In this document: positions 2,961 to 50,954 of the stretch, in pieces
How positions within the stretch are numbered: the first letter of the stretch is position 1
Layout of the letters: every line of letters starts with the position of its first letter
From: Piromyces finnis finn
Taxonomy: Eukaryota > Fungi > Neocallimastigomycota
DNA length: 64,000 bases
NCBI GenBank assembly: GCA_002104945.1
Contig: MCFH01000081.1
Coordinates: 126,598 to 190,597, forward strand
Reading direction: 5' to 3'
Program-made: the position numbers and the translations under genes
The notes under the pieces: model-generated
Told to the model about the DNA's origin: nothing
The model's input: the letters and a program-made list of their open reading frames with translations, nothing else
The model's database searches: none

Positions 2961-2991
<31 letters not shown>

Positions 2992-5740: not shown

Positions 5741-5817
<77 letters not shown>
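5741..5817. repeat. (AAT)n microsatellite
   Basis: Uninterrupted TAA/AAT run, roughly 25 units. Confidence 0.95.
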
Positions 5818-5821
<4 letters not shown>

Positions 5822-10017: not shown

Positions 10018-10449
10018 ATGAGCAGTAACAAAGATGAAATTAAAAAGCAAAATAAAAAGGCAATTAAAAATGTCTTAAAAACTGTTGCAGGAATTGGTTT
10101 AGCTACTGTTGCTACCGTTGGTATTTTATCAAGTATTCAAAAAGATAAAATTATTGAAGACCAACAACAAACCATTGAAGAAAGAGATGAAGAAATTAAT
10201 TATTTACAAAAAAGAAGAGAAGCTGAGGAAGAAGATGCCTTCAAAGGCAAGGGAAAAGAACTAGTAAATGAAAATGGTGAAAATGTTTGTTCCGTTTGTC
10301 TTTTGGGAAAAGTTACAAAAGTATTGGTGCCATGTGGTCATTATGCTGTATGCTCTGCATGTATTACAAAATTAAAGGCATATAATGATTCAAGATGTCC
10401 AATTTGTAGAAGAAAATTTGAAAAAGCTATTATGGTCTATGTTAATTAA
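10018..10449 (+). CDS. Small intronless RING-HC (C3HC4) E3 ligase-like protein with N-terminal hydrophobic segment
   Basis: CSVC...LVPCGHYAVCSAC...CPICR RING; VAGIGLATVATVGILSSI hydrophobic stretch followed by a coiled coil. Confidence 0.85.
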   Translation: MSSNKDEIKKQNKKAIKNVLKTVAGIGLATVATVGILSSIQKDKIIEDQQQTIEERDEEINYLQKRREAEEEDAFKGKGKELVNENGENVCSVCLLGKVTKVLVPCGHYAVCSACITKLKAYNDSRCPICRRKFEKAIMVYVN

Positions 10450-10951
10450 TATATTTTAATGTAATATTTAATAATGTCAATTCCAGATTAACCTTCCGAA
10501 ATATAAAAATATAAATAATAATTTAATAAATTATTATTTAAGGCAAAATAAATAATAATGTAAATGCAAATATATATTGTACTGAAATAATACGTATTTA
10601 TACTTTAATAATTTTTTAAATCATTTTTTCTTATATTTTATCGCTTTTCCAATATTGTACATAAAAATTGTTTAATAATAATAAAAAATAAAATAAAATA
10701 AATAAAAAAAGTAAAATAATATGATTTAGAAATCAACAAATTAAAAATATTATGAAATTTACAATTGAAATATATTTTTTAAATATTAATCATATTGCGA
10801 ATATGCTATTTTTTGTTTTATTATATTGTTAATTGCATAAATAGTTCACTTAATGTAATTTCTATATAGGATAATATAAAGACTGAAAAATAGTGGATAT
10901 GAAAAAATAATTAATTTTTATAAATAATTTTGGTAAAGTCATTATGAAAAA

Positions 10952-14432: not shown

Positions 14433-16390
14433 GGTGGTGATGATGATGATGATGTCTTTTTTTATTATATACTTTATGATAATAATCTAATAAAAATTCA
14501 TTAACCCTGTTTCTAAAAAGGTATGTTGGTCGTACTTTCCATTCATATGGATCATTACATTTTCGTTTATAGTTTTCATCAACGTTAATAAAATATTCAT
14601 GCACTGTAGATGTATAATTATTGTAATGTGGAATATTTTTGTTTCTTTTTTCTATTCTATCGTTCATTGCTAAAAAACTAAGAAAATGATTTTCATTCAT
14701 AAAATTATCTTTATTTTTAATATTACTCATAACTGAATGTAGTAATGTATTTGTATAATTTTTACGATTTAATAAATAGTATAAATAAGCTTCATCATCA
14801 TATTTTAATTTTTTTTCATTAAAATGAATAGGTTTGATTGATTCATTGTTAGAATAAGTTAGCTCTTCGATATCTTCAAAATATTCATTTTTTTCGTTTT
14901 CGGTATATAGATTACTTTGTTCTTCATTATCAATACTAGCATTCACTTCTATATTTATAATTTCATTATTATTATCATCGCCAATATTTCCAATATTAGT
15001 ATCATCAATATTTATATTATTAATATTGGTATTATCATTATTGAAATTATCATTTTGTTGATTTATTCTTTCATTAAATTTATTTAAAACTTCATCTATA
15101 TTCACATATTTATTTATATATTCTTTCAATTCTTCTATTGTATAAAATTGTTCCTACAAAAATGGAAAGGAAGTTTATAAAAATTAATTTAATATATATT
15201 AAAGTTTCAATATAATATTTACATTTAATTATATAATACGATAATACAAATACTTTTGAATTATATCCATGGTTATGTTCATCAAAGGATATATTTTCTT
15301 TATGGTCTATATTTCCATTTCCTGATAAAGGTAGTTTTTCATTGGAAAGTTTGTCATGATCCGGAATATTAGAACGGACAATATTTAATTTTGAATTTAT
15401 TGGTTTCCTTTGATCTAAAGTATTGGAATGAACACTTAACATACTATTTAATTTGGAATTAACTGATTTCATTTGATCTGAGTTATTTGAATTAACACTT
15501 AACATACTATTTAATCTTGAATTGGCTGGTTTCTTTTGACCTAAAACATTGGAATGAACACTTAACATACTATCTAATTTTGTGTTATTTAATTTCTTCT
15601 GATCTATAGCATTGGAATGAACACTTAACATACTATTTAGTTTAGAATTGACTGATTTCATTTGATCTGAGTTATTTGAATTAACACTTAACATACTATT
15701 TAATCTTGAATTGGCTGGTTTTTTTTGATCTAAAACATTGGAATGAACACTTAACATACTATCTAATTTTGTGTTATTTAATTTCTTCTGATCTATAGCA
15801 TTGGAATAAACACTTAACATACTATTTAATTTGGAATTGACTGATTTCATTTGATCTGATTTATTTGAATTAACACTTAACATACTATTTAGTTTAGAAT
15901 TGACTGATTTCATTTGATCTGAAGTATTTGAATGAACACTCAATGTACTATTTAGTTTGGAACTAGTTGGTCTTTTTTGATATGACATTCCTGAATTCAT
16001 ACTTAATTCTGAATTTGATTTGTAATTAGAATTTTCTTTTTGAATATCCTTATAAGTATCGTATTCTAAATTTATTTCATCAATGTTATCTCTTTTTTGT
16101 AAATTTAATACACTTTTTTTGTCATTTAGTTGATATTTATAATTATGGATTGGTTTTTCCTTTTTTTCTTCAATTATATATATACCACTTTCTAAATATT
16201 CACTTTCATTTATATCGAATTTTCTTTTTCTTTGGTTTAATTGATTATTTTCTATAGATAAATATTTAAATATTTCATAATCACCATTCAATGGTATGTT
16301 TATTATTTTATAAATAGTTTTAATTGATAAATTATTTGATCGAAAAGGACCATATGTGTTTGATTTAAATTTTATTATTATATATTTCAT
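14035..16390 (-). CDS. Orphan protein with internal 21-aa tandem repeats and an 18-His tract, probably 2 exons
   Basis: Two long ORFs can be joined by a GT-AG intron (about 15253-15155; YNSK^EQFYTIEELKEYINKY); no family recognised. Confidence 0.65.
15383..15961 (-). repeat. Coding 63-nt tandem repeat, about 9 copies with 189-nt higher-order periodicity
   Basis: Units of the type SKLNSMLSVxSNxxDQxKxxN; variants recur as an A-B-C pattern. Confidence 0.92.
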
Positions 16391-23487: not shown

Positions 23488-25931
23488 TATAAATATATTA
23501 TAAATATATTAATTTTTATAACAAACAATTAATATAATTAAATGTTAAAAATTATAAAATGATTTGGGATAATATAATAATAATAATACCTAAATTCTTT
23601 CCATTTTTAGTATAAAATACTTTTTTATCTATAAAATTGATACAACATCCAACAACATCTCCAACTTCATAAGAGGGACCATAATGAGTCCAATTTCCAT
23701 GTTCATAATGATCACCAGTATAATTACAATAGCCACTACTATTCTTAGAATAACCTTTTAAATAATAATATTTTTAAAATGTATCAAAATTATAACAATA
23801 CAATAATAATAAAAATAATAATATCAATAAAATAAGTATATATTCCTTTTTACATAATATATTTATATTATATTTAACCTGGTCTATTTGATAATTCCAT
23901 ATGTCTTGTACAATATCCAATAGCACCAAAATTAGGCCTAATAATATATAAATTAGACATTAAATTCATTCAATTAATAAAAATATATTGAATATTACCA
24001 TTCAGATCTTCTAAACATAATTTTAACTTCGTAATAATAAACTTGATGTCTATTAGGTATAGGCATATTTGATCTTACAGATGCCCAACATTCATTATCA
24101 ATTAAACCTTTTTATTTAAATAAAGTTTTATAAAAAGATATTTCAATATTATTATTATCGTTATTATTGTTTTCTTTTGTTATATATTATATTTATATTA
24201 TTTTATATTAATACCGATATGCTTAGCATAAGTATTATTTTCATGTAACTCTAATTGAACTGCTTTATCATTTGGATCTAAACTTAATGTTGTCAAAACT
24301 ATTATATATAATAATATATTGTTATTGTTATTATTTTATTAACTTATATATAATTAAATAAAGATTCAAAAAAATAATTGCTCTACCATAATATTTATGT
24401 TTTAGCAAATTAATGGTTTCTATTTTTTTTATATATATGCACATATATAATTAATAATTGATTAATTAACATTTCGGTTTTATAATAAACACATATAGTT
24501 CTTTTCTTATTACCTTCAAGTTTTTCGATTTTTTGAAGTTGCTCCTTACTTTTTACTAAAATAAAAACAATAAATATTATCTATTTAATAAAAAATATCT
24601 TATATTTTATTTTAAATTAAAATTTATTTTAGGTTTACTTTCTAATTCTTTTATTTCTTTTTTATGATTTAATTCAATATATTTATGTTTTTTAATAACC
24701 CAATCCAAGCTTTTTTCGTTAAATTCGCATTTCCAAATATGGTTCTTTAAAATATAAAAAGTATAGTAATAATTATTATATATCATTTCTCTTTAATTTA
24801 TTATTGTTTTATTTTAGTGTCATTTATTAAAATTCTATATATGATATTTACTTTATATTCATTTAATGATATATGCGTTAAAGGACAACCTTTATAAACA
24901 TTAATACATGAAATATACTTCATTTGATCTTTATTTTTATCAATTAGATTTCCTATTGATTTAAGTTCATTTCCTTCGGATATTGATGATGCCGAATTAT
25001 TAACTGATAAATCATTTAAATTCCCAATTGAAGTTAATGATACAATACTTTGTCTTTTTTTAAAAACACTTTCACATTTTTTTTCATGATTACTTCGTTG
25101 ACTTGCTCTCAATGCATATTTACAATAATTACAAATATATATACTTTCACATTCCATTAAATGTTTTCTTAATTTATTTCTTGGACCATACCAATAACAT
25201 ATCTCACTTACTGAAGAATCATCAGAATCATTTTCATAATTATTTAAACTTAAATTTGATTGAATATTATTTTTATTATTAGGACTTTTACTGTTTTCAT
25301 TTCCTAAACAAAATACTTCTAATGTATCAACAATTTTTGAAATATTTTCATCAAAAGGAAGAATAATTCTTATTGGATGTTCATTATTTCCTTGATTAAA
25401 ATCATCAATTTCTGTTTTTAATTGTGTTATTTGACCACACTTTGGACAAGTTATATTAATATATTCTTGAATTTGACCTATTGAATCCAAAGACTGAATT
25501 GATATTGTCAATTGGTCTTGAACTGAATACATTATACTATGTCTTCTACTATTGGTTATATTATCGTTATTTATTTTTTCATTGTCAATGTCCTTATCCT
25601 TCTCATTTATAAAACAATTCTTATTTTCATTTATATTAAGATTTGACGAAATATTATGTTCATCATCACCATCCTGCTTTTTTTTTATTTCGTTTATGTT
25701 TATTGAATAGTCTTCTGGATTTTGAAGGTATTGTCTTTTGAGTTCATGAATAATATGATCTTTACAAAAAATATGTTCACAACTTAATCTTACAACAGAA
25801 GGTGCCGGTACTTTATTACATAAAGCGCACTTAAATATTGATATTATAGGGTTTTCTTTATATACAAGTTGATCATAGTATATTCTAGGTACTTCTTCAT
25901 TTTTTAATTTAAAAGTTGAACCTGTCGCCAT
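23214..25931 (-). CDS. RING + TRAF-type zinc fingers + coiled coil + SPRY domain protein (putative E3 ligase), multi-exon
   Basis: CALC...CEHIFCKDH...CPKC RING; CYWYGPRNKLRKHLMEC and CINVYKGC TRAF-like fingers; SPRY motifs YYYEVKI, YGPSYEVGDVVGCCINFIDKKVFYTKNGKNLG, VNFGQEPFIFDI. Confidence 0.8.
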
Positions 25932-26330: not shown

Positions 26331-29300
26331 ATGGAATCATTTGAAATTTCAGAAAGAGATCTTGAAGAGGAAAATGAATTATTCAATGATCCAGAATCAA
26401 GAAGAAAACGTAAAAGATTTACAAAAGAAGATGCAATTTATGGTATTTTTAAAGGAAGCGATAGTGAAGATGAAGTAGATTACAAATCAAATAATATTTA
26501 TTCCAAAAATAAATATAATACAGGAATATCATTTGTCAAAGGACAACTTACAAATAATATTAGTAATAAAAGCCCATCAAATAGTAGTAGTGATGATGAA
26601 AATTATAGTAGAAATAGTGATAGTGATAGTGATAATAATAGTAATAGTAGTAATTCAGATACAGAAAACGAAAATGATAATATGGAAGAAGATATAAATA
26701 ATGAATCATCAATAAGTGGAAACCAAGGTTTAGGTTTTGGTAATTCTGCAGGTCAAGGCCTTGGTTTTGGTAATTCTGCAGGTCAAGGTCTTGGTTTTGG
26801 TAATTCTGCAGGTCAAGGTCTTGGTTTTGGTAATTCTGCAGGTCAAGGTCTTGGTTTTTCAAATAATAATGATAATATAAATGTACCAACAGAATTTTCA
26901 TCTTCCAAAAATAAAAAAGAAAAAAAGAAAAAAGAAAAATCAAATTATCCAACATCAACTTATAAATCTAAATTGAAAGTAGATAAGAATTTTGGTAAAT
27001 TTGAAGAGCATACAAAAGGTATCGGTTTAAAACTTTTAATGAAGCAAGGTTATGTACCTGGTGAAGGTTTAGGTGTTAATAAAGATGGTATTACAGCACC
27101 AATTGATGTTAAATTAAGACCAAAAGGTCAAGGTCTTTCATTTAATAATTTTGATGAAATGACAGAAAATGACAAAATACAACAAAAAGAATATAAAAAA
27201 AAATATGCAACAGAATTGAAAGCAAAAGGTATTAAAATGGATATTGGTTTAGATGAAATCGATGAAAATTTAATGGAAGAAGAAGAAAATGAATTAGAAG
27301 CAAGACCAAAAACAGAAGCATGGAAAAAGGGAAAAAAGAATAGAAAAAAGATTACTTTATATAAAACAGTAGATGAAATTATACGAGAAGAATCTGAAAT
27401 TGTAGAAAAAAATTTAAATGTCCCACAACCACTAAAAATTATAGACATGACTAAAAAAGAAGTCAGAATTTTATCTGATTCAAGTCAATTATCATCAGAT
27501 AATAAAATAAGTATGGACAAATACTTTGAAATTAATGAGCATTTGCCTGAATTACGACACAATATTAAATTAATTACTGATTTAACCCAAACTGATTTGA
27601 TGTATATATTAAAACAACTAAAAGTTGAAGAAACAAAAAGAAAAGGTTTAGAAGAAAAATACTCCAAAAAATCAGAAGAAATAAAATCAGAAAAAGTAAG
27701 AATTGAAAAAGTTAAAAAAATAGATTCTATAATAAAAGAAGTTAAGCAAATATCTCAAGATATAACTAAAGAATTTAAACTTTTGGAAAAAAGAAAAGTA
27801 CTTTCTCAATATCAAACTGATCAACCAATAAATAAAAATGATATGACTGAAGTTCAAGCTATTTTTACTAATATAAAAGACAATATATTCACAGCAAATG
27901 ATGGGAACAAATTATTTTCATTATTAGATAAAAAATTTTTACAATTGGAATCGGATTATGACTTATTCTTAGAATTTAAACTTGATAGATTACTAGTAAC
28001 CGTAATAGCACCAATATTCAAAAAAATGATAGCAAATTGGAACCCATTGGAAGATCGATATTTATGTCTAGAATATTTTATAAAATGGAAAAAGTTATTA
28101 CTTGTAAAATCATCAGAAAATAATAATGAAAATGATTCATCTTATCTTTTTATTATGACATCTCAAAAAGGAATGACCTGTTTTGAATCTTTATTATATT
28201 CTTCATGGTTACCTAAAATTAGACAATTAGTAAAGTAAGTAATTATAATACAAATACATATTAATATTAATGTTATTTTCAGTATTATAATAGTATTAAA
28301 TTTAATGAACAAAAAAAAGTTAAGTAAATAAAAATAAAATAAAATAATAGATAGATAGTAATATAATTTTTAATTTCCTTTATACCCAAATATTTTTATT
28401 ATTTACTATAATAGTAATGATTGGGATCCAAGAAATCCAGAATCTTTAATTAAATTATTAGAAGAATGGGAAATTATTTTACCACAATGGCTTAAGAATA
28501 ATATAATAGAACAATTAATTATACCAAAACTTAAACTTGAAGTTAATAATTGGATGCCTCAAATTTACTTCAAAAATCCAGAATCAAATAATACTATTCC
28601 TCTTCATTCTTATTTATTACCTTGGTTAGTTGTTATTGATGAAGAAAGAATGCATTTACATTTATTTGAGACTGTAAAGAATAAATTAATTGTCTTTTTA
28701 CATAATAGACCCTTTTTGGAAAATGAAAAAGATGGTGGCAAATTTATATTACAAAATCTCTGTTCATGGCTAGAGGTATGTTTATTTTGCCATTATATTT
28801 ATATAAAATATTTATTAATAATTTTTCTTTTTCACTTTTAGGTATTAACAAAAGAAGACTTTATGGATATCTTAACTCAATGTGTACTTCCAGAATTAGT
28901 AAGACATTTAAGATATAACTTCTTTATTAATCCAGCAAAACAAGATATTAAACCTTTAATGCAAGTTTTGGCATGGTCAGAATTTGTTCCAGAAATGTTA
29001 ATGACAAAGGTAGTTTCAACTGAATTTTTCCCAAAATGGTATAAAATTTTAGCAATGTGGCTTAAATCAGGTGAGGAAAATGGAAATGAACCAAACTACA
29101 ATGAAATTGTTGCATGGTATAAATCATGGAAAGATACCTTAAAAGATATCAAAGGATTAGATGATTATTGGAAACTAGGTTTAGATATGATGAACGAAGG
29201 TGCAAATTGTAAAATACCGACGATTAATTCATTATCTGATGATCAACCATTACTATCGAATATTAAAGGTATGTCTAATTAAACAATATATATATACAAA

Positions 29301-30562: not shown

Positions 30563-32416
30563 TTAATTCGAAGTCCTTGTTTGTAAAAATCTTGGATAAT
30601 TAGTCCATCGTAAAAGTTCATATACTTCTTTAAGAACTGGCTTGAATAAAATTATATTAACTTGATCATTTTCATTTATCTTTTGTTCAACTGATTTTAC
30701 CAAGTCACTAGTTAAATTTAATTGGTATTCTGAGCCTTCCGGTACAAACTTTTCAAAAATATTTATTAAATGATTTTTAATTTCTTGAGACTCATTTATA
30801 ATGGCAGTTTCATATAATCTTTCATAGTATGGGATTTCACTCATATCCATACTGTCATTGCTTTGGGTATTTAATAAACTATTTTGATCATCATAATTTG
30901 GATTTTCAGCTAATTTCTTTAAATTCCATGATGCATTATTATTACTACTACTTGATATAATCTTGTTTTGGCATTTTAATAATATATTAATCATAGCTTC
31001 ATAGAATAATAAATTTTCAATGCAAACTTCACCTACTAAGAATCTCTTAAATTCTTTATAAATAGAATTTTTTGGGTTTAATACTTGTTCAAATGTTTTT
31101 ATTTCCATTTCATTAACTTCATCATTAATTTTAACTTTAGCAATACTATGTCTTCTATATTTTTCATGTAATAATTCAACCTTATTTTGATAAATATGTA
31201 CAGCAAATACTGGTCTTACAACAATAATAGTATGATATAAGATAAAGAATAAAACAAACCATATAGAAACAGGAACACCTTTAAATCTTATAGATAAAAA
31301 TCTAAAAACTATATATCCTAAACTACATAATAATGAAATTATGATAATACTGTAAATTTCATTTTGAATACCAATTGTTTCTTTATAATTTCTAAGTTTG
31401 TATTTTTTATACAGAGCATAAAACATACTAATAAATATTGTTATTAAAATAGCAGTATGGCATTTTTCACTAACGTATTTGTTTTTATATAATACACCAT
31501 TTTTAAATGTATGCATTATTAAAACAATTACAGTGATGACACCAATTAATCCAATGACAGCTATATTTGACCATTTTTCAAAAAATTTAAATTGAATAAC
31601 ATTTATGTGGAGCTTATCATTTTCACTAAAAATGATAAAATATAATATATTAACATATATAAATTATTACTTTCAAAAATTTTAAACTATATACTTCACT
31701 TACATTAATACACTTTCACCTCGAACTATTTTTGTATTATGAATAATAAATAATATTAAATAAAGATTAGTTATATTCTTTAAAAAGTATTTTTTATTTT
31801 TATATAATATAATTTATCAATATACTTGAATTATTTAATCTTGCATTTTGAATTTTGAATCTAAATTCCATTTTCTTAACTCTAATAATACTTGTAAACA
31901 TCCATAATGGGATTGCATATAAACTAGTATGTTTTTATATTATAGAATAGAATAAGTTTTGTTAATATTTTCTATAATGCATATATTCATTTTTTTTCTC
32001 TTTATCTATAGTATTTACCATATTATAATATATATTATACTTGGAATTTTAAATTTTTTATGTTCACTTGGAGTATCTGAATCCTCAGTAAATGCAGCTT
32101 CAAAAAGTAAAAGTAATGTTAATAATATTACAGCTGTAGTATTATAAATATATATATTAATATCACGAATCATCATCAATTTTGATTTTTTACATAGAAT
32201 AAATAATATTAATGAAGTGATAATATATAAGAGTGATACTAATAATAGTGGTATATATATAATGAAATAATAATCAGTATATTTTTCAACTTGTTCATCT
32301 AATATTATTGAAGTTTGATTATTGAAAATATCTTGATTAGAATATGATATATCCTGTCCTTCATTAAAATTGTCTTGGTTAGAATAGGATATATCTTGAC
32401 CTTTGAATGGTGCCAT
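30563..32416 (-). CDS. Seven-transmembrane protein with C-terminal RGS domain (GprK-like), about 4 exons
   Basis: About 7 hydrophobic helices across exons, KETIGIQNEI loop, then RGS motifs FKRFLVGEVCIENLLFYE, IFEKFVPEGSEYQLNL and EVYELLRWTNYPRFL. Confidence 0.8.
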
Positions 32417-33392: not shown

Positions 33393-35219
33393 TTATTTAA
33401 AAAAAGATGAAGCAAGATTTAATAATTCATTTCTTTTTTCATCATATTCTTCTTTACTTGCATCATGATGATTGGAAATCCATTCAATTGTGGTAGTAAT
33501 AATATTTCTTAATTTTTCTTCATCCTCTATTTTAATTTTGTATCTATCCTTTTCATTATTAAGACGTTTAAGAAGTTGACGAGCATAATCATCAAGTTTA
33601 TTCATAGATTGAATTCTTTCTCTGGCTTTCCTATCTTCTTCTCGATACATTTCAGCTTCACTAATTAAACGTTCAATCTCTTCTTGAGATAATTCATTAT
33701 TTAATATGGTAATCTCTCTAGAAAGACCAGTACCTAACTCAACAGCAGACACGTGAATAATACCATTGATATCTACTTTATAAGTTAATTCAACTTTTGT
33801 TTCACTACGTGGAGCTGATGTAATACCTTCTAATACAACTTCACCTAGGACAGTATTATCTTTTACTAATTCACGTTCACCTTGTACAACTCTAAATCTT
33901 ATGACTGTTTGTCCATCATGACATGTAATACGAATATCTTTACCTTCTGCTGGAATATGTGTATTACGTTTAATGAGAGTATCTACTGTTGTTCCTCTAT
34001 TATCAACACCTAATGAAAGAGAAATAACATCGTATAAATTTAAATTTTTAATAGATTCTGATTGATCACCTAAAATATTTGCTGCTTGAATAGCTGCACC
34101 ACATGCAACAGCTTCATCCGGATTAACAGTTTTTCTTAATTCTTTTCCATCAAAATAGGAGGAAACTAATTTTTGAATTTTAGGAATTCTGGTGGATCCA
34201 CCAACTAATACAATTTCATTAATATCCGATTTGTCTAAATCGGCATCAATAAGAACTCGTTCAATGGGTTCAAGTATCTTTTCAAATAAATCTGAATTTA
34301 ATTCTTCAAATTGAGCACGTGTTATACTACTGTAAAAATCTATACCATCAAATAAATATTCAATTTCAATAGAAGCATAAAAAGAAGATGATAGAATACA
34401 TTTAGCACGTTCACATGCTCTTCTTAATCTATTTAATGATCTTAAATTAGTAGAAATATCTTTGTCATACTTTCTTTTAAATTCTTCAACAAAATAGTCT
34501 AAAAGTTGATTTGTAAAATCTTCGCCAGCTAAGTGTGCATTACCTGCTGTAGCTTTAACTGTAAATGTACCATTATTAATAGATAAAAGAGAAACATCTG
34601 TTGTACCTCCACCAATGTCGACAATTAAAACATTTTCTTCACCCTTTATTGTTTTGTTAAGACCATAGGCAAGAGCAGCAGCAGTTGGTTCATTTATAAT
34701 TTGTAAAACATTTAAACCAGCAATTCTACCGGCATCTTTTGTAGCTCGACGTTGAGCATCATTAAAATAAGCAGGAACGGTGATAACAACATCTTTTACA
34801 ACATTTTCACTTCCTAAGTAATCTTGAGCATAATCTTTTAATTTAGAAAGAATCATGGCAGATATTTCTTCTGGCATAAAATCCTTGATTTCATTTTTAT
34901 ATTCAACCTGAACATATGGTTTTCCTTGCTTATTAACAACTTTGAAAGGCCAGTACCTTAAATCAGATTGAACTTCCATATCATTAAAATTACGACCTAT
35001 TAATCGTTTAACATCAGAGACTACGTTTTTAAAATCAATTCCATTTTTCTGTCGAGCTTCATCACCAACTAATCTTTCAGTAGAAGTAAATACAACCAAA
35101 GAAGGTGTTGTACGATTGCCTTGTTCATTAGCAATAACTTCTACATGACCATTTCTCCAAACAGCAATACATGAATAAGTAGTACCTAAGTCAATACCAA
35201 TGATTATAAATTCCCCCAT
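33393..35219 (-). CDS. Atypical Hsp70 copy 1 (608 aa, intronless, no EEVD)
   Basis: GIDLGTTYS, TVPAYFND, INEPTAAA, VLVGGSTRIPK Hsp70 signatures; ends LASSFFK. Confidence 0.95.
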   Translation of the reverse strand: MGEFIIIGIDLGTTYSCIAVWRNGHVEVIANEQGNRTTPSLVVFTSTERLVGDEARQKNGIDFKNVVSDVKRLIGRNFNDMEVQSDLRYWPFKVVNKQGKPYVQVEYKNEIKDFMPEEISAMILSKLKDYAQDYLGSENVVKDVVITVPAYFNDAQRRATKDAGRIAGLNVLQIINEPTAAALAYGLNKTIKGEENVLIVDIGGGTTDVSLLSINNGTFTVKATAGNAHLAGEDFTNQLLDYFVEEFKRKYDKDISTNLRSLNRLRRACERAKCILSSSFYASIEIEYLFDGIDFYSSITRAQFEELNSDLFEKILEPIERVLIDADLDKSDINEIVLVGGSTRIPKIQKLVSSYFDGKELRKTVNPDEAVACGAAIQAANILGDQSESIKNLNLYDVISLSLGVDNRGTTVDTLIKRNTHIPAEGKDIRITCHDGQTVIRFRVVQGERELVKDNTVLGEVVLEGITSAPRSETKVELTYKVDINGIIHVSAVELGTGLSREITILNNELSQEEIERLISEAEMYREEDRKARERIQSMNKLDDYARQLLKRLNNEKDRYKIKIEDEEKLRNIITTTIEWISNHHDASKEEYDEKRNELLNLASSFFK

Positions 35220-35602
35220 TTTTAATTAATATATTAATAAAAATGAAAAATAAAAAAAAATTTAAAGAAAAATTTTCTTTTTATATTAATTTATAAAATA
35301 TAAATATGTCTAATTATTTAATTAATATAATTTTATTAATAAAATGATCAACTATAATATATTAAATATTTTTTATAATAATAAAATGGACTTTAAAAAA
35401 TGGAAATGAAAATGAAAATGATAAGCTTCTTTAATATGAAAAATAAAGAATTATATTTTAGTATAATTCCTGTATCCAGTATTATATTAGAAAATCTTAT
35501 AAAAAAATAATTATATTTATTAATATTTATTAATATTTTTTTGTTATTATATATATATAAAATAATAAAAAATAAAAAGTTCTTTATTTTTATATGATTA
35601 TG

Positions 35603-35682
<80 letters not shown>

Positions 35683-35808
35683 AAATGGAAAAAAGAAAAA
35701 TACTAAACATGAATTTTAATAATTTTATATTAGATAGTTATATTGATAATGATTAAATAGAGAAAAATATTAACAGATAATGTTTTTTGTAAGATATTTA
35801 AAAAAATA

Positions 35809-37626
35809 TTAAATATTAAAGATAAGAGAGGCAAATCTTCGTAATTTATTTTCTCTATTTATACATTCTTCTTTACTAGCATCATAATTATTTTTAACCC
35901 ATTCAATTGTATTATTAATTTCTCTAGCAAGTTTTTCTTCATCGTCTTTACTAATTTTATATTTGTCTTTTTTATTATTGAGACGCTTTCGTATATTGTA
36001 TGCACATTTTTCAAGACTATTCAAAGATTCAATTCTTTCTTTTGCTTTTCTGTCTTCTTCTTCATACATTTTGGCTTCCTTTATTAATCTTTCAACTTCA
36101 TCTTGATATAATCTTCCTTTATCATTCGAAATAGTAATAGCTTTAAAAGTAGTTGTACCTTTTTCAACAGCTGAAACATTCAAAATACCATTACTATCAA
36201 TATCAAAAGTAACATCTATTTTTACTTCACCACACGGAGCTGGTGTAATACCTTCTAATATAAATCTATCCAATAGAAAATTATCTTTTGCTAAAGAACG
36301 CTCACCTTGTAATACTCGAACATCTACAGTAGTTTGATTATCTTCAGCTGTAATATATGTATGAGTTTTCCTTATTGGAATAAGTGTATTATTTTTAATG
36401 ACAATGTTCATTAATCCTCCTTTAATTTCTATGCCAAGAGACAATGGAGTAACATCTTTGAATTTTAATTTTTTTATTGATTCTGATTGGTCACCAGAAA
36501 GACTAGCTGCATGAATAGCGGCACCACAAGCTACCGCTTCATCTGGATTAATATTTCTTCTTATTTTTCTCTCATGAAAATAGGATGAAACCATTTCTTC
36601 AACCATTGGTATACGAGAAGATCCACCAACTAATATAACTTCATTAATATCAGATTTGGTTAAATGAGCTTCTTCAATTGCCTTTTCTATTAGAGTAATG
36701 GCCTCTTCAAGTAAATCCGAAATTAATTCTTCAAATTGAACACGAGTAATACCAGTGAAGAAATCTATACCATCAAATAAACATTCAATTTCAATGGAAG
36801 CATAATCAGAAAAAGATAGATTACATTTAGCACGTTCACATACTATTCTTAATCTATTTAATGATCTTGAATTAGTAGAAAGATCTCTATCATATTTATT
36901 TTTAAATTCTTTAACAAAATAGTCTACAAGACGATTTGTAAAATCTTCACCACCTAAGTGTGCATTACCTGCTGTAGCTTTAACTGTAAATGTATTATTA
37001 TTAATGTTTAAAATAGAGATATCAAATGTACCACCCCCGAGATCGAAAATTAGAATATTTTCTTCACCCTTTATGGTTTTATTAAGACCGTAGGCAAGAG
37101 CAGCAGCTGTTGGTTCATTTATAATTTGTAAAACGTTTAAGCCAGCAATTTTTCCAGCATCTCTAGTTGCTCGACGTTGAGCATCATTAAAATAAGCAGG
37201 AACAGTAATGACAGCATCTTTTACTGGACAACCTATATAATCTTGAGCATTATTTTTTAATTTTGAAAGAATCATGGCAGATATTTCTTCTGGCATAAAA
37301 TCCTTGATTTCATTTTTATATTCAACACGAATATAAGGTTTTCCACTCTTCTCAACAACTTTGAAAGGCCAATGTTTTAAATCTGATTGAATATTTGAAA
37401 ATTCTCTTCCGATTATTCGCTTTACATCAAAAAGAGAATTTTGTGGGTATCTTTCAGATTTATATTTAGCAGGATCACCAACTAAAATTTCATTATCCTT
37501 AATAAAAACATAAGAAGGTGTAGTACGTTTTCCAAGTTCATCTGTAATAATATCTACATGACCCTTATTCCATATCCCTATACATGAGTATGTAGTTCCT
37601 AAATCAATACCAATTGCATTATTCAT
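35809..37626 (-). CDS. Atypical Hsp70 copy 2 (605 aa, intronless, no EEVD)
   Basis: GIDLGTTYS, IFDLGGGTFDIS, ILVGGSSRIP; ends FASLIFNI. Confidence 0.95.
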   Translation of the reverse strand: MNNAIGIDLGTTYSCIGIWNKGHVDIITDELGKRTTPSYVFIKDNEILVGDPAKYKSERYPQNSLFDVKRIIGREFSNIQSDLKHWPFKVVEKSGKPYIRVEYKNEIKDFMPEEISAMILSKLKNNAQDYIGCPVKDAVITVPAYFNDAQRRATRDAGKIAGLNVLQIINEPTAAALAYGLNKTIKGEENILIFDLGGGTFDISILNINNNTFTVKATAGNAHLGGEDFTNRLVDYFVKEFKNKYDRDLSTNSRSLNRLRIVCERAKCNLSFSDYASIEIECLFDGIDFFTGITRVQFEELISDLLEEAITLIEKAIEEAHLTKSDINEVILVGGSSRIPMVEEMVSSYFHERKIRRNINPDEAVACGAAIHAASLSGDQSESIKKLKFKDVTPLSLGIEIKGGLMNIVIKNNTLIPIRKTHTYITAEDNQTTVDVRVLQGERSLAKDNFLLDRFILEGITPAPCGEVKIDVTFDIDSNGILNVSAVEKGTTTFKAITISNDKGRLYQDEVERLIKEAKMYEEEDRKAKERIESLNSLEKCAYNIRKRLNNKKDKYKISKDDEEKLAREINNTIEWVKNNYDASKEECINRENKLRRFASLIFNI

Positions 37627-38614
37627 TTCAGTTATTTTATAATTAAATTATTTGCTTTAATACTAAGTTAATGTTTCAAAGAGATATTTATATACTAATG
37701 AATAATTAATGAATTAATTGAGGGTAATAAAAGAATTTTTTGATTATTTATATGTTTTTTTTTTTTTTATCATCATTTTATTATTATTATTATTAATTTT
37801 TATTTTTAATATTTGATGTCTATATTCCTATATATTTTATTATTTTAAAAAATGCTTTCATGACTATTAAAAAAAAATAATAATATATAAAAACTTTTTT
37901 TCGATATTTAGACATATTTTTTTTTTTTTTTTGTATATTAAATTTAAAATTCTATAAAATAAAGTTATAAAAAAAAATTACATTTTATCAAAAAATATAA
38001 TAAACTTTAAAGATCAATAAAGTTTGTATATATTATTTTAATTAAGTAATATCCAATTAAAATAAAAAATCAGGCAGATTTCGGACTTGTCCAAGCTTTT
38101 ATTTTTAATATTTTTCCCAGTTAAAATCAGGTCAAATTTGATAATCAAAAATATTATATTATAAAAAATGTTAGATTATTTATTTCATATGGAATAATAA
38201 AAAGTTTTATCTATAAAAAAGAAGAAAATAAAAAAAAAAACTATCTTTTTATTAATTGGTTTATAATTATAATATTATAATATGGATTAAAAAAATAAAA
38301 TATGAAATATTAAGTTAAATATGAAATAAATAATAATAAAGAAAAAAGGGTATTTTACACAATAACTTTTTCTAATAATTAGTATAAATGTATGATTTCC
38401 ATATTAATTTTTATAATAATTATTTTCTTTTAAACTTTTATTAAAAAAAAATAATTTTTTATTATATTTTATTAATTTAAGTAAAAAAAAAGGTATATAC
38501 AACTTTAAAGTAACTCTTTTTTTTATAGTAGAAATTTTTTTTACACACATTATTTAATTTTTATGAAAAACTTTTTTTTTTTAATAATTTTTTATTTATA
38601 ATCTTGGCATGATA

Positions 38615-40493
38615 TTAGCATAATTTTTTAATAAATTTAGCGACTTCTTTTAATTCTTTTATTTTATCTTCATAATCTTCTTTACTAGCATTATAATGTT
38701 CATGAATCCAATTTATCATATAATTAACAGTTTTAGTTAGCTTAATTTCATCCTCTAAATTCATTGGTGTTGTTGGTGGTGTTGTTTGATATAAGTTAGG
38801 ATAAAGAAAATGATTTAATTCTATTGTTTTAAGATAATTACGAAGATTGTATAAGTAATTTTCTAGGGAAATTAAAGTTTTTATTCTTTCTTTTTTCCTT
38901 TTATCATCTTCTTTATAACTTTCTGCTTCCTTAATTAGTTTTTCAATATCCTTCTGATATAGACCTCCTTTACAATCAGAAATTGTAATTTTTTTGGAAA
39001 GATTTGTCCCTTTTGCACTTGCAGTTATATGTAAAATACCATTTTGATCAATATCATAATTTAAATTTATTTTTACTTCTCCACGCGGAGTTAGAGTAAT
39101 TCCATTCAAAGAAAATTCACCTAAAGTAATATTATCCTTTACTAGAGTACGTTCACCCTGACATATTCGAAACTTCATGGAACTTTGATTATCACGATAA
39201 GTTCTACATTTAATCGTTTTATTTATTGGAATGGGTGAATTACGTTTTATAACTTTATGCATTATATCTCCTCTAATTCTAACACCTAATGATAATGGGA
39301 TAGCATCTTGTAATTTTAAATTTTTAATGGACTCAGAAAAATCACCTAATAGGCACGCCACTTGAATAACTGCTCCACATGCGACGGCTTCATCTGGATT
39401 AACAGTTTTTCTTAATTTTTTTCCATCAAAATAAGAGGAAACCAATTTTTGAATTTTAGGAATTCGGGTGGACCCACCAACTAACACAATTTCATCAATA
39501 TCCGATTTGTCTAAATCGGCGTCAGAAAGAACTCGTTCAATGGGTTCAAGTATCTTTTCAAATAAATCTGAATTTAATTCTTCAAATTGAGCACGTGTTA
39601 TACTACTGCAAAAATCTATACCATCAAATAAATATTCAATTTCAATGGAAGCATAATCAGAAAAAGATAGAATACATTTAGCACGATCACATGCTTTTCT
39701 TAAACGATATAATGATCTTGGATTAGTAGAAAGATCTTTGTCATATTTTCTTTTAAATTCTTCAACAAAATAGTCTACAAGACGATTTGTAAAGTCTTCA
39801 CCTCCTAAATGAGTATCCCCTGCTGTAGCTTTAACCGTAAATGTATTATTATTAATGGTTAAAAGAGAAACATCAAATGTACCTCCTCCAAGATCAACAA
39901 TTAAAACATTTTCTTTACCCTTTTTAGTTTCATTAAGACCGTAGGCAAGAGCAGCTTCTGTTGGTTCATTTATAATTTGTAAAACGTTTAAGCCAGCAAT
40001 TTTACCAGCATCTCTAGTCGCTCGACGTTGAGCATCATTAAAATAAGCAGGAACGGTAATAACAGCATCTTTTACTGGGGCACCTGAATAATCTTGAGCG
40101 TTATCTTTTAATTTTGTTAAAATCATACTAGATATTTCTTCCGGAGTAAATTCTTTAAATTCATTTTTATATTCAACACGAACATAAGGTTTTTCTAATT
40201 TTTTAATGACGTTAAAACTCCATAAATCAATATCCGATTGAACATCCTCATCCCAAAAATCACGACCTATTAATCGTTTAATATTATAAATTGTATTTTT
40301 ATAATTAATTCCAGCTTTATAGAAAGCTTCATCACCAATTAATCTTTCAGTAGGAGTAAATGCAATATAAGAAGGTGTTGTACGATGACCCTTTTTTATT
40401 AGCAATAACTTCTACATGACCATTTCTCCAAGCAGCAATACATGAATAAATAGTACCTAAATCAATACCAATTGAAATATTGTAACCCATCAT
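38615..40493 (-). pseudogene. Atypical Hsp70 copy 3 with a +1 frameshift near the 5' end (pseudogene or homopolymer assembly error)
   Basis: True start [32 protein letters not shown] at 40493 is out of frame with GHRTTPS; one extra base in the A6 run (40392-40397). The rest of the ORF is open to 38615. Confidence 0.85.
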
Positions 40494-46208: not shown

Positions 46209-49200
46209 ATGGAATTATCTAACAGAAATAGGATTTCATTAAGAAGATCTTCCGAAAATTTGTTGGGAAGAAGAAAGTCAACATTTTCGGTAAAAAATGA
46301 AAATAATTTTGTTGACATTAATAAACCCATAAGAAATTCAAGTTCATGTAACAATCATCACTAATTAATATTAGTTAATATGTTTAAAATAATGATATAA
46401 TTAGAATATAATAACTAAATTCTATGTTTTTCGTCATAATATATATATATATATATATATAAATATTATAAAATAAAAATTATTACATTAAAACTCATGA
46501 ATATATTGTTGTAAAAATAGTACTTTCAATATGTTCCAATGATTTCGATCAGTTCAAAGAAGAAATAGAAAAAAGAATACAAAAAAGAGAAGAAGAAAGA
46601 GAAAAAAATAGAAAAATAATGAAAGAAGAAATAAAAAGAGAAAAAGATCTTATAAAAAAAATGCATAATATTCAAAATGGAGAAGATGAAGAAAAAGTAA
46701 TATTTTGATTATTTCTTTAATATATATATTTATATATATTATATATATATATAACTAATCCTATATATTTTATATATTGAAATTAAAATTAAAATAACTG
46801 AAAAAAGAAAAAAATATATTTTAGTGATAAAGAATTTTATGGTGTAAATTTTGAAAAACCAGAAAAAGATGAAATTATTGATTTAAAAAAAAGAAGTAAA
46901 ACAGATACGAAAAGTAAAAAATTAACTAAAAAATTAAGAGAGCACCAAGGAGATATATTTATTAAAGCTTTAACAAAATGTATCAATAAAGATAATACAA
47001 CAATGATAATAGAAGAAAATGAGGAATCATCAGAAGATATTTCAAAAAATAAACGTCTTTCTATGCTATCTTCAAAGTCTGTTCAAATTAATAATGAGCA
47101 AACAAAAACAATGTGGGATGCAGCTGATGTTTTCCCAGTTGGTATTGGAGAAACTGAAGGTATTGATATATTTCGTATTGAAGAATTAAGTGTAGCAATG
47201 ATTGATCCAGATGAATATGGTTCATTTAGTACTGGTGATTGTTACATTATATTAAATACGTATAGAGAAGAAAAAGAATTAAAACATAAAATATTTCAAT
47301 GGATTGGTAAACAAGCTGAAAACGATAAATTATTTTGTTCTGCCATATATTCGGTTATGTTAAAAGGTTTAATTAATGAAACAGAAAACATTTTTAGAGA
47401 GGTAATACAAATAAAATAATATTAATATAATCTATAACATGTACTAAAATGAAAATTAAAAAAAAAAAAAAAACCGAATTAATGAATATATAAATAAATA
47501 AAAATTGATAGGTTGAAGGTGAAGAAAGTGACGATCTTAAAGATCTTTTTAGTACTGATATAAAATATTTAGATTATAATGAAAGCGCAGAAAGTAGATT
47601 ATCATCACCATACGAAATTCAATATCCATTAAGAATGTATAAAATTTTTGATAATGGAAAATTTCATTTGGTAAATAATTTTACATTAAATATTTCTATA
47701 AAGCATTGTTAATTAATATAAATTAAAATAATTAAATAAGTATTAACTCTCTATATACTCTATATGTATTTTTTGGTATTTAAATTTTTAATAATTTTAA
47801 TTATAAATATAGGTTGAAACTAGTCATTTAATGTTTAATACTAATAATGTATTTATTATTGATAATGGATTTGAATTATATCAATGGAATGGAAAAAAAT
47901 CAAGCATTAAAAATAGAGTATTTGGTAATATTTTATTAAAAAGAATTAATTCAAATGAAAGAAATAAAAAAGCCGAAGTTAAAGAATTTGAAGAATTTGA
48001 AGAAGATGATTCATTTTGGGAATTATTTGAAGAAGAAAGAACTGAAGAAAATGGTAAGTGTGTATTTTTGTATTGTTTTTTTTTATTTATTATATATATT
48101 TACATAAATAATAAGAAATTAAATCAATATTTTACTATTTTTATTTTTAATTAGCTGCTGAATTTGAAGAAATAGCAAATGAAAAATATGGAAAATTTTT
48201 TGAAGTTGCTAAACAACCAAGCAAATTATACAAGTATGTATTTTACTTTCTTCTTTTCTCTTTTTTCCTTAACATTATTAATAATTAAATTATTATTATA
48301 TAATATTTTAAAGGGTTCCAGATATTGAAAGTCTAGATGATATTGATTGTGAAAATTATTTAGTAGCCGAAAAATTTTTCTTTGATAAAAATTTATTGAA
48401 TTCTGAAAATTGTTATGTTATGGATTGTGGGGTTGAATTATTTTTATGGACAGGTAAAAAAGCATCTGAAAATTGTCGAGATTTAGTACAAGAATTTACA
48501 GTGGTTAGTTTATTAAAAATTTTAAATCTAAAAAAAAAAATATAATTTTTAAACTAACCCTATATTACATTTCTATAGAAATTAATTCCAAATAAATTAA
48601 GACCAAATTGGGTTGGTTTACATAGATTTAATGAGAAATCCGAAAATGAAATATTTTCTATTAGATTCTTTAATTGGGGAATGCCTGAAAATACAGATTT
48701 ATCGAAATTAATTTTACCAGGTAGTTATATAATTAATTGATGAATATTAATATATCAAAAAATATTAACATAATACATAATACATGTAGACAATTGTTAC
48801 AAAGGAGAAATAAAAATTGATGCTAATGCTTTGTTCAATACTAATCCCAAAAATATGAATTTCGAAAATGCTAAACAACTTAATAGCATTATGACGAATG
48901 CCAATGATAATTTACAAGCTATTTATGGTTTCGTATTTGATCCAATAAGTTGTAACTTTATGGAAATCACTGAATCTGAAATTGGACAATTTTATAGTAA
49001 AAATTCATATATCTTTTTGTGTATTTATAAAGTTAATAATGATACAGAAGACGGCGATAATGAAAATGATTCTGATGATTCTGATTATGAAAATGATAGC
49101 GAATTAGCACAATTTCAATCCACAAAAAGTCATACAATTATTGGTAAAAAGAAAACATTCAACCATAAAATGAATTGTGTTGTTTATTTCTGGCAGGGAA

Positions 49201-50954
49201 CCATGGCAAATAGATTTGCATGGCTATCCTTTTTATATTCTAAAAAAGATCAAATTGAAGCAGGAACTTTAGCAGCCTACAACGAACCATTACATGTTAT
49301 TATCTTAAATCAAGGAAATGAATGTCTTCCCTTCCTCTCCCATCTAAATAACTATTGTGTTTATTATAAAAATAAGAGATTAAACTATTATGACGAAGCA
49401 AATATTGTTAATCCACTGTCTTACACCTGTTCTAACGAGAATATCAATATGGAAGACGAGGACGATAAAAGTATTATTTATAAGAAGCAAACTCTAAGAA
49501 TGTTCCACATACAAACAAATCAAAAATATAAAACAACTAGAGCATGGGAAGTTGATATTAAAGCAGAATCATTAGTAACCAGAGACTGTTTTCTTGTTAT
49601 TTATAATAATTTAGATTTTATTCAACGAGATAGTGAATGTAATTCCGAATTAGATGATAATGGATCTACTAATAATGTAAATGAAGAAGAAATTAAAAAT
49701 GAGGAAATGAAAAATAATTTTAATTCTATGAAAGAAGAAGAAGAAGGAGATATATCTATAGATTTAGGACGTAAATATTCTGTGGATAGTTACGCTAGTA
49801 CTGTCACTAGTATCAATCATAGAAATGAAAAACCAGCGGGAGAAAATGGACCATTTATTTGTGATTTATGGGTTGGTAAAGGTGCAAGTAAAGATGAAGT
49901 TAGAAGAGCCATTGATATATCTAAATGGATATCTGAATTAATGGCTAGTGATGAACCTTTGAGTGTTAAAAAACCTGATAATTTTGGTTTTGATTTAAAT
50001 ACCATTCAAAATTCAAACCTTTCTATTCTTGATGGCAAATATACTCTTAATTTAATTCAAGAAGGTAGTGAAAGTGATCAATTCTGGAATAATTTAGGAG
50101 TGAATGTTAATGCAGAAAGTAATGTACTATCCACCTCTTCATCGTTTTATGGTACAGATAAGAGAAGAACTTTAATAAAGAATTATTCTTCCTCCTTCCT
50201 TTTGAACATGAAAAAAAAAAAGTTAAATATATACTACGGTAAAGGTACTGAATCATGGTATATGAAACCTCCAAGATTCTTTAAGTGTGATTGTAGTCAG
50301 GGTTATTTTTCAGCCAGAGAAATAGAAAACTTCTGTCAATATGACTTATCCGATGACTCTTGTATTATTTTGGACAGTAATTCACCTGGAAAAATTTATG
50401 TATGGATTGGACGTAATAGTAGTGATGTTGTTCGTAAACTTACTCAAAAGAGTGTAGAAGTATGGCTTACCAATATCGATGATGGTAGATGGTATGATAG
50501 TAACTTTTTAACCTTAAGTAAAAATTCAGATGAAGCACCAACAACCACCAATAATTCTATAAATAATATTAAACAGACACAAAACGAAACAGAATCAGAT
50601 AACAGCCATACTTCAAATATCCAAGAAAAGAAGGAAGATGATATTATTGAAAAGCTTAATAACTGTTTAGAAGAGGACCCATATATTAAACGTATGAGAG
50701 AAAGAAGAGAAAGAAAAACTAAGAAAGCACCAAAAAAAAGTGATGTAGTTATTGAATATCAGGGTGAAGAATCGATCGATTTTAAATCTTTCTTCTTTGG
50801 ATGGTCAGAAGAAGTTTCCAAAAATATAAATTATGATCCAGGAAATTCATACATAAAAGAAATGGCTAAGAAGAAAAAACAAAGAGAGGAATTATGTAAT
50901 ACAGCAGAATATTATGAGCCTTTGATTTATAGATTATGTAATGTTGACGAATAA
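46209..50954 (+). CDS. Flightless-I-like gelsolin/villin-repeat actin-binding protein, multi-exon, no LRR seen
   Basis: GIDIFRIEELS...GSFSTGDCYIILNT...IFQWIGKQAENDKLFCSAIY and PPRFFKCDCSQGYF...FCQYDLSDDSCIILD...YVWIG resemble FliI gelsolin repeats. Confidence 0.85.

Follow-up and report, generated by a model that had tools for sequence, protein, structure and literature searches.

The 64,000-nucleotide stretch of a Piromyces finnis scaffold that we analysed (the window) contains three Hsp70 genes in head-to-tail order, all encoded by the minus strand. Copy 1 (P0001; 33393–35219, minus strand) and copy 2 (P0002; 35809–37626, minus strand) are each a single intact ORF encoding a tail-less Hsp70, of 608 and 605 amino acids respectively and with 64% identity to one another, and NCBI/UniRef contain the exact copy 1 protein, assigned to a P. 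finnis scaffold of 190,597 bp. Copy 3 is divided between a main frame (38615–40405, minus strand) of 596 codons, which has no in-frame ATG and covers Hsp70 from residue ~33 onwards, and an N-terminal frame (40347–40493, minus strand), which begins with an ATG at 40493 and stops after 48 codons. All three copies were matched end-to-end by the Pfam HSP70 profile (PF00012), with E-values of 2e-209, 3e-212 and 5e-195 over ~590 of 599 profile positions (copy 1: 697 bits, positions 1–591; copy 2: 706 bits), which bears out the tandem triplet of Hsp70s described in a first-pass annotation of this DNA. Residues are numbered as in human HSPA1A, with which the numbering of copy 1 coincides.

The two frames of copy 3 are one base out of register and part at an A6G3 homopolymer run, AAAAAAGGG (40389–40397, minus strand). 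Because of this shift D10 of copy 3 is, as assembled, not in frame with the remaining protein. The N-terminal frame holds the GIDLGT motif, with D10, G12 and T13 present, but its first phosphate loop carries T14I; the main frame has E268D. The NCBI model of this gene (P0013) skips the break via an unrelated upstream exon. Despite the break, the main ORF has stayed open. The P. finnis assembly is PacBio-only (PMC5622200), and the frameshift may therefore be a homopolymer indel error; failing that, copy 3 became a pseudogene only very recently.

Hsp70 is among the most conserved of proteins, and its control by J-proteins through R171 (R167 in DnaK) and a hydrophobic interdomain linker is textbook knowledge. 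All three copies read NVLQIINEP in place of NVLRIINEP, as had been noted before, at 34686–34712 in copy 1, 37111–37137 in copy 2 and 39962–39988 in copy 3 (all minus strand), with Gln at the R171 position encoded by CAA in each. The polar linkers previously described were likewise found, as NLNLYDV in copy 1 (34026–34046), KLKFKDV in copy 2 (36451–36471) and NLKLQDA in copy 3 (39302–39322; all minus strand). Here L392 is replaced by N, K and K, and L394 by Y, K and Q, in copies 1, 2 and 3; in terms of DnaK, the L390 and L392 equivalents of copy 1 are Asn and Tyr, while those of V389 and L391 are still Leu. The reported change of GEDFDN to GEDFTN (D234T) is present as EDFTN in every copy, and none has the GP-rich/EEVD tail, an N-terminal extension or HDEL, the proteins ending instead in ...SSFFK, ...LIFNI and ...IKKLC. 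Among 128 canonical cytosolic Hsp70s these sites are essentially invariant (R171 is Arg in 100%, L392 and L394 are 99–100% conserved, D234 is equally constant and nearly all sequences have an EEVD-type tail), and the deviations of the trio are therefore far beyond chance.

Copies 1 and 2 keep D10, G12, T13, T14, K71, E175, D199, G201, G202, T204 and D206. The earlier statement that every copy retains the core ATPase residues thus holds for these two but not for copy 3, in which D10 is out of frame and, given T14I and E268D, the core residues are not all kept. [quoted passage not shown] Further changes, which the annotation does not mention, comprise R272C, at an Arg whose role in adenine stacking we take from PMC12756766 (AKC in copy 1, 34398–34406; copy 2, 36823–36831; copy 3, 39674–39682; all minus strand), together with E218T, Q156R, R261N/Y, D285E, S286Y/C and, in copy 2 alone, R416N at the DnaK K414 position. 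Q156R lies beside R155 and could compensate for R171Q. Within the substrate cleft A406R/K and F428R/Y/C were found, such that the cleft gains basic residues (A406R/K, F428R), and there are ~100 more changes at canonically invariant positions.

In DnaK, R167 pairs with the Asp of the HPD motif, E217 and L391 touch the J-domain, L390 and L392 face the NBD, and mutating these residues abolishes both docking and stimulation by J-proteins (PMC4595643, PMC13012618, PMC6843406). This work on R167, E217 and L390–L392 agrees with the annotated link of the linker and the Arg to J-domain action and docking. It also lends weight to the annotation's functional proposal, that the trio has lost the canonical allosteric wiring and acts as uncoupled holdases, nucleotide sensors or decoys, since R171Q is present in all three copies and the linker positions that face the NBD are polar. 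AlphaFold models point in the same direction. While the NBD of the copy 1 model matched Hsc70/Hsp72 NBDs with TM-scores of 0.93–0.96 (1.7–2.1 Å), AlphaFold2 run with the same alignment docked a canonical control in an ATP-type state (pTM 0.76; linker strand at 391–395; 2.7–6 Å from BiP-ATP/DnaK-ATP states) but left copy 1 undocked (pTM 0.61), with pLDDT <50 in the linker and first SBD strand, no resemblance to a known state and a best full-length match no better than 19 Å, a comparison in which the control is favoured by an alignment of mostly canonical sequences.

We nonetheless regard the uncoupled proposal as only a tentative possibility. The J contacts, linker and tail are indeed changed, as it holds, but most of the relay is intact (P147, R155, D395 and N483 are kept), and few of its residues vary within the wider clade to which the trio belongs. 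Having changed on exactly the surfaces that co-chaperones use, the proteins are unlikely decoys for them. The rebuilt cleft (A406R/K, F428R) casts doubt on a holdase with the usual client preference and, together with an adenine pocket weakened by R272C, suits neither a generic holdase nor an effective nucleotide sensor. It is also unlikely, in our judgement, that the proteins are still J-dependent foldases in which either a dedicated, co-evolved J-protein with an altered HPD region or Arg156 restores the contact lost with R171Q. DnaK R167A can be rescued by DnaJ D35N (PMC13012618), the other J contacts (N174, T177, V219 and the L393 equivalent) are retained, and Q156R is fixed in nine of nine clade members and older than R171Q, all of which would suit such a partnership; however, E218T/M and the linker have changed as well, and no J-domain gene was found in the window.

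The clade comprises about a dozen Hsp70s of ~605 residues, all of them from Piromyces or from related metagenome contigs. Its monophyly has 100/100 support, its very long stem measures 0.93 substitutions per site, and it is nested within the Neocallimastigomycota Ssa-type clade (support 99/100 and 98/99) in a tree rooted on animal Hsc70 and containing no Ssb sequence, so that the suggestion of a lineage-specific Hsp70 subfamily stands. When 5.8 billion clusters were searched with the clade's own profile, only the clade exceeded 1100 bits (members 1104–1170), with canonical Hsp70s of single length scoring ≤1001 bits. In a separate comparison by bit score, Hsc70 came out ahead of the other Hsp70 types (HSPA1A 709 bits, versus 626 for BiP, 596 for Ssb1 and 569–578 for Chaetomium thermophilum Ssb). 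A canonical Hsp70 (P0158) with R171, DLLLLDV and EEVD coexists in P. finnis. By this phylogeny the trio's family is a young Piromyces-lineage offshoot of ordinary cytosolic Ssa/Hsc70-type Hsp70, its direct ancestor, with which (HSPA1A, P0158) it retains 57–60% identity, the same domain order, the catalytic residues and most of the relay residues. It differs in having no GP-rich/EEVD tail, in R171Q, E218T, D234T and R272C, in a linker polar at two of four hydrophobic positions, in its basic cleft and in a roughly tenfold faster rate of evolution. Expansion of the Hsp70 family in the anaerobic-fungal phylum has been reported (PMC8778642).

Two other Hsp70 types resemble the trio in part. Fungal Ssb proteins are ribosome-associated, cytosolic, ~610 amino acids long and without EEVD, and the clade is of similar length and likewise cytosolic and lacking EEVD; identity with Ssb was rejected on bit scores (569–596 for Ssb, against 709 for HSPA1A) and on the position of the clade inside the phylum-specific Ssa group of the tree described above. 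Ssb also keeps R171 and the hydrophobic linker. Hsp110/Sse1 proteins, a separate clade of ancient origin, are enlarged by a long acidic insertion in the SBD and by a C-terminal extension. Their linkers (EFSVTD; PFKFED in yeast) and those of the trio (NLNLYD, KLKFKD, NLKLQD) share an alternating hydrophobic–polar–hydrophobic–polar pattern ending in Asp, which is routine in Hsp110s, whose linker docks (PMC6843406), a point against the uncoupled proposal, and which could suggest convergence on Hsp110-like behaviour, as a stably ATP-bound holdase or an exchange factor for canonical Hsp70. Yet the trio, at 605–608 amino acids, is colinear with HSPA1A residues 4–602 with neither the SBD insertion nor the long C-terminus, the clade is nested within the Ssa clade and AlphaFold does not dock copy 1, and we consider such convergence very unlikely.

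The whole clade shares the polar linker, GEDFTN and the absence of EEVD, but four members retain Arg at position 171 and another has Lys, R171Q having arisen later, inside P. finnis. The features arose at different times, contrary to the idea of a loss acquired as one shared package, and this too weighs against the uncoupled proposal. The clade evolves roughly 10x faster than canonical Hsp70s, has lost 21–43% of canonically invariant positions and carries 6 fixed and 24 clade-wide replacements at such sites. In a second P. finnis cluster one copy is intact, another lacks the lid and a third has an internal deletion. P0005 is chimeric, combining a copy 2-like NBD with a copy 1-like SBD, and dS is unequal between the domains of a given gene pair. 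One relative has about eight tandem lid repeats, and another lies on a transcript-sized contig.

Estimated by the NG86 method, which is crude at a genome GC of ~20%, dN/dS was 0.36–0.49, with the values for copy 3 against its siblings (0.47–0.49) not above that between copies 1 and 2, and all domain pairs except one gave values below 1. The neutral chance of a 600-codon ORF staying open at a dS of 0.5 is ~1e-10. Judging from these figures, copies 1 and 2 and the main frame of copy 3 are held open by selection. Partly relaxed, slowly dying genes can also show dN/dS of 0.4–0.7. Only between 10 and 23% of sampled words were matched in sequencing runs guessed to be RNA.

These data bear on whether the copies are simply redundant duplicates on the way to becoming pseudogenes and without a role of their own. 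The frameshift and T14I of copy 3, the truncated and internally deleted copies of the sister cluster, a dN/dS that is high for an Hsp70, the extent of loss at canonically invariant positions and the failure to find a heat-shock element in the window would all accord with decay. It is nevertheless quite improbable as the whole explanation, given three ~600-codon ORFs each still open at a dS of ~0.5 (P ~1e-10 each), the dN/dS values by domain, the relative on a transcript-sized contig, and a clade that has outlived speciation (P. finnis, Piromyces sp. E2 and metagenome relatives) and has fixed clade-specific residues.

The trio probably represents, in the explanation we favour, a tail-less offshoot shaped by duplication, recombination and decay, in which the ATPase core has been kept and the partner surfaces rebuilt to give weakly coupled accessory chaperones. 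The family would grow and shrink through tandem duplication, recombination between copies and decay. The core for ATP hydrolysis is conserved, as is most of the relay that links NBD to SBD. Lost or rebuilt are the surfaces by which outside partners control canonical Hsp70: the J-domain contact set (R171Q, E218T and the equivalents of DnaK L390/L392 in the linker), the face for exchange factors (R261, D285, S286), the adenine-stacking R272, the TPR-binding EEVD tail and the substrate cleft, which has acquired basic residues (A406R/K, F428R). Such proteins may still bind and hydrolyse ATP, in a weakly coupled cycle independent of generic J-proteins and TPR co-chaperones, and would serve an altered, probably narrower range of clients, being specialised accessory chaperones or clamps and not general foldases. 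The retention of P147, R155, D395, N174 and T177 argues, against weak coupling, that coupling still matters. The trio is a real, moderately unusual variant in which nearly every helper-protein surface is altered, and any chaperone function is putative.

A highly speculative idea is that the tail-less Hsp70s of anaerobic gut fungi are less chaperones of the usual kind than a diversifying recognition family, joining a conserved ATPase engine to fast-changing, recombining binding domains for non-self or variable targets. The basic cleft, the swapped SBDs and the relative with about eight tandem lid repeats could be understood this way, and proteins freed from generic J-protein, nucleotide exchange factor and TPR control might bind viral, bacterial or plant-derived molecules of the gut.

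Close parallels to the trio are already known in plant clusters of truncated Hsp70 (Hsp70T), in Trypanosoma brucei Hsp70.c (TbHsp70.c) and in Hsp110 linkers. Plant Hsp70T proteins of the T1 lineage likewise derive from a full-length cytosolic Hsp70, have no EEVD, diverged mainly in SBD-alpha and the C-terminus and occur in tandem clusters that include N-terminally truncated members, with transcripts that are hard to detect; loss of J-contact residues was not found in the accessible part of that work (PMC10687569). The clade differs in its separate, anaerobic-fungal origin, and because it arises inside Neocallimastigomycota its resemblance to Hsp70T in tail loss and tandem clustering is convergent. 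TbHsp70.c is also a lineage-specific cytosolic protein that lacks EEVD, has an atypical SBD and is described as an ATPase that acts as a holdase, but it is still stimulated by the J-protein Tbj2 and is a single gene of an unrelated lineage (PMC8269394, PMC3953656), whereas the clade is a recombining tandem family.

Were the copies merely decaying duplicates, the finding would be an ordinary one. Otherwise the clade constitutes a natural experiment in which selection has kept Gln at R171, Thr at E218 and Cys at R272, and two NBD-facing linker positions have become polar, yet the proline switch, R155 and D395 remain. It adds a concrete, datable case to the Hsp70 family expansion in anaerobic fungi (PMC8778642) and, if the proteins are active, would reveal which parts of the allosteric machine are dispensable or can be rerouted, as well as providing ready-made variants for tests of a J-independent Hsp70 cycle.

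Three Hsp70 open reading frames (ORFs) lie head-to-tail on the minus strand of the window, which has a GC content of ~20%. Copy 1 (33393-35219, 608 aa), copy 2 (35809-37626, 605 aa) and the main frame of copy 3 (38615-40405, 596 codons) each matched the Pfam HSP70 family from end to end, with human HSPA1A residues 4-602 colinear with copy 1 and almost identical in numbering, and a presequence, signal peptide and HDEL are absent from the trio. The feature is real and its first-pass annotation mostly right, copy 3 having been misread: NVLQIINEP and EDFTN are present in 3/3 copies, the linkers read NLNLYDV, KLKFKDV and NLKLQDA in copies 1, 2 and 3, respectively, and the GP-rich/EEVD tail is indeed absent from all of them. 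Across 128 retrieved canonical cytosolic Hsp70s, R171, L392, L394, D234 and an EEVD-type end were 99-100% invariant. The intergenic DNA separating copy 1 from copy 2 contains an AAT-repeat, poly-Asn low-complexity stretch (35393-35710). Using Pfam scans we also found ORFs for a TIP_N/G-patch/GCFC splicing-factor-like protein (26331-28238, plus strand), an RGS-domain protein (30563-31516, minus strand), a gelsolin-repeat protein (48831-50954, plus strand) and a histidine phosphatase (11832-12674, minus strand); these four neighbours are ordinary eukaryotic genes and none is a chaperone partner, while a scan of the single ORF at 24801-25931 (minus strand) gave no match at E≤0.001. Scanning the window for heat-shock elements (TTCnnGAAnnTTC) returned 0 matches against 0.8 expected, which is too few to be informative, and transcription was hinted at, weakly, by sequencing runs of presumed RNA origin, in which 10-23% of sampled words were found.

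All three copies had been credited with the full set of core ATPase residues, and this does not hold for copy 3. Here the ATG at 40493 starts a 48-codon frame containing GIDLGT that is offset by a single base from the 596-codon main frame, the shift being located in the run AAAAAAGGG (40389-40397), and the copy carries E268D as well as T14I, the latter within phosphate loop 1. In the public NCBI model of this copy (P0013, 628 aa, 38615-40493) the frameshifted N-terminus with its phosphate-1 loop is replaced by an unrelated upstream exon, and the annotated protein therefore has no D10-T14. Since PacBio reads were the sole input to the P. finnis assembly (PMC5622200), a homopolymer indel error is a live alternative to a real break.

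The proposal that the trio represents a lineage-specific Hsp70 subfamily was borne out. With a search profile built from eight members, proteins of this clade of tail-less ~605-residue Hsp70s scored 1104-1170 bits compared with ≤1001 for every single-length canonical Hsp70, to which they are 57-60% identical. Beyond the trio, two other P. finnis scaffolds contribute at least six clade genes or fragments of genes, a single gene comes from Piromyces sp. E2 and three proteins derive from metagenomes; the profile search recovered zero members from the Anaeromyces and Neocallimastix genomes. A maximum-likelihood tree, with animal Hsc70 as its sole root and built without named Ssb, Kar2, Ssc1 or Sse1 sequences, recovered the clade as monophyletic (100/100) and nested within the Neocallimastigomycota Ssa-type clade (99/100 and 98/99); the stem leading to the tail-less clade measured 0.93 substitutions per site compared with 0.01-0.1 for canonical branches. 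Bit scores fell from 709 for Hsc70 to 626 for BiP and 569-596 for Ssb; on bit scores, length and placement in this Hsc70-rooted tree, descent from Ssb or Hsp110 is rejected. P. finnis also encodes a normal Ssa-type Hsp70 (P0158) in which R171, DLLLLDV, GGEDFDN and EEVD are all present, and the trio is thus accessory and not the housekeeping chaperone. One metagenome-derived member, P0017, lies on a 1,889-bp contig (L002, JGI 3300030914) with a 59-nt leader and just 6 nt past the stop codon; a contig of this transcript-like size would fit an assembly made from mRNA, and hence expression of the clade in a putative gut sample.

The first-pass annotation had described a shared loss of allosteric wiring, and this was correct for the linker, D234T and the tail. 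All nine full-length members have a polar linker, D234T, E218T/M, Q156R, A406R/K and tail loss. However, four members retain Arg at position 171, P0006 has Lys there, and Gln occurs in a P. finnis group that includes the trio (support 99/97), which indicates a stepwise history rather than loss as a single package. Outside this group Gln171 was seen only in one aberrant metagenome relative, a 1,163-aa clade member encoded beside the P0011 gene (L003, Ga0187902_10018293, 1371-4862, minus strand). In this protein the first phosphate loop is degenerate (GIDLGTSSSRIG), GGEDFTN is present, and the divergent SBD is followed by ~8 tandem repeats of the helical-bundle segment of the C-terminal lid (unit ...NASKE(D/E)Y...). 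As it falls outside the P. finnis Q171 group in the NBD tree, its Gln may have been acquired independently.

Mapping of the substitutions gave a consistent theme, in which the engine and internal shaft are retained while the surfaces for outside regulators and clients have been replaced. Catalytic and phosphate-binding residues kept in the trio are D10, T13, K71, E175, D199, T204, D206, the glycine loops, K271, S275 and R342. Likewise, the internal relay defined in DnaK is kept at P147 (DnaK P143), Y149, F150, D152, R155, I172, N174, T177, D395, N417 and N483, with R416 retained in copies 1 and 3 and changed in copy 2. Within the substrate cleft the arch residue A406 is R/K clade-wide, F428 is R/Y/C, Y431 is C/A/Y and I440 is F. 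On lobe IIB, R261N/Y, D285E and S286Y/C alter what we take to be the Bag/Hsp110 exchange-factor face. Using residue roles drawn from PMC4595643, PMC13012618, PMC6843406 and PMC12756766, we found R272C at one of the arginine pair between which adenine is stacked (PMC12756766), R171Q at the equivalent of DnaK R167, which partners the HPD aspartate and D481, and E218T at the equivalent of DnaK E217, which contacts J-domain helix II; the linker is changed at the two positions (DnaK L390 and L392) that, with ATP bound, are turned towards the NBD, and its two outward positions are still hydrophobic, including the equivalent of DnaK L391, which is touched by the HPD histidine (PMC4595643, PMC13012618, PMC6843406). 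Such changes could be accommodated by a J-protein that has co-evolved as a dedicated partner, or be offset by Q156R, which neighbours R155, and we consider this unlikely; no J-domain gene was found in the window by Pfam scans of large ORFs or a six-frame J-domain regex.

To contrast copy 1 with a canonical Neocallimastix Hsp70, both were folded with AlphaFold from one shared 46-sequence alignment, giving pTM values of 0.61 and 0.76, respectively. The control formed a linker strand at 391-395, had an SBD-beta pLDDT of 85-90, and best matched the ATP states of BiP, DnaK and Ssb over its full length (TM 0.82-0.93, 2.7-7 Å). In copy 1 pLDDT was <50 over the linker, first SBD strand and loop (residues 396-410) and moderate in SBD-beta, and while its NBD alone fitted at 1.7-2.1 Å, the best full-length match was no better than 19 Å, with a domain arrangement corresponding to no solved state. 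The copy 1 model is a contrast with the control and not a structure, being derived from a canonical-dominated alignment by a method that does not compute free energies, and it agrees with, but does not prove, weakened docking. The first-pass idea of weakened coupling is partly supported, but retention of the relay contradicts a complete loss of wiring.

A second P. finnis locus (L001, MCFH01000054.1 148556-170372) carries Hsp70 copies at 2029-3585, 10003-11817 and 14505-15815, comprising an intact 604 aa copy, a 518 aa copy stopping before the lid and a 436 aa copy with an internal NBD deletion. The 518-aa copy has a near-identical NBD (dS 0.012), a different SBD and no lid. Between these copies lie two identical, inverted GST_N ORFs (5787-6107 and 7480-7800), which suggests a recent inverted duplication. 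The clade protein P0005 combines a copy 2-like NBD with a copy 1-like SBD, and dS varies threefold to sixfold between domains of one gene pair, and both observations point to recombination or gene conversion. Pairwise dN/dS (Nei-Gojobori) was 0.36 for copy 1 against the clade protein P0003 and 0.47-0.49 within the trio (dS ~0.5), and was highest in the SBD; these values are very high for Hsp70, yet <1. Counted over 338 positions with ≥97% invariance across canonical Hsp70s, retention by the trio was 73-79% for the NBD, 57-72% for SBD-beta and 57-61% for the lid, with six replacements fixed clade-wide. Slow decay of the duplicates would be another account of this divergence, and seems quite unlikely. 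Each gene has 270-290 one-step paths to a stop codon, and the probability of a neutral 600-codon frame staying open at dS ~0.5 is ~1e-10; selection has therefore maintained copies 1 and 2 as open frames, as it did copy 3 until very recently.

Anaerobic-fungal Hsp70 expansion has been noted at the family-count level (PMC8778642), and our literature search found no paper on this fungal clade or on a natural R171Q/E218T/R272C combination. Comparable systems include the plant Hsp70T T1 lineage, described in PMC10687569 as tail-less, divergent cytosolic Hsp70s that, as here, occur in tandem clusters, and a lineage-specific trypanosome cytosolic Hsp70 that lacks EEVD and has holdase activity (PMC8269394, PMC3953656). 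Alternating linkers like those of the clade are routine in Hsp110 (EFSVTD, PFKFED; PMC6843406), and convergence on Hsp110-like behaviour is, in our judgement, very improbable. Of the roles initially suggested, that of decoy is made unlikely by loss of the very surfaces that serve co-chaperones, and the rebuilt cleft casts doubt on a generic holdase. The best-supported reading is of accessory Hsp70s that form a fast-evolving, lineage-specific family with birth-and-death turnover, whose members would probably still turn over ATP, would probably have lost most of their connection to generic J-proteins, exchange factors and TPR co-chaperones, and have probably changed their client preference.
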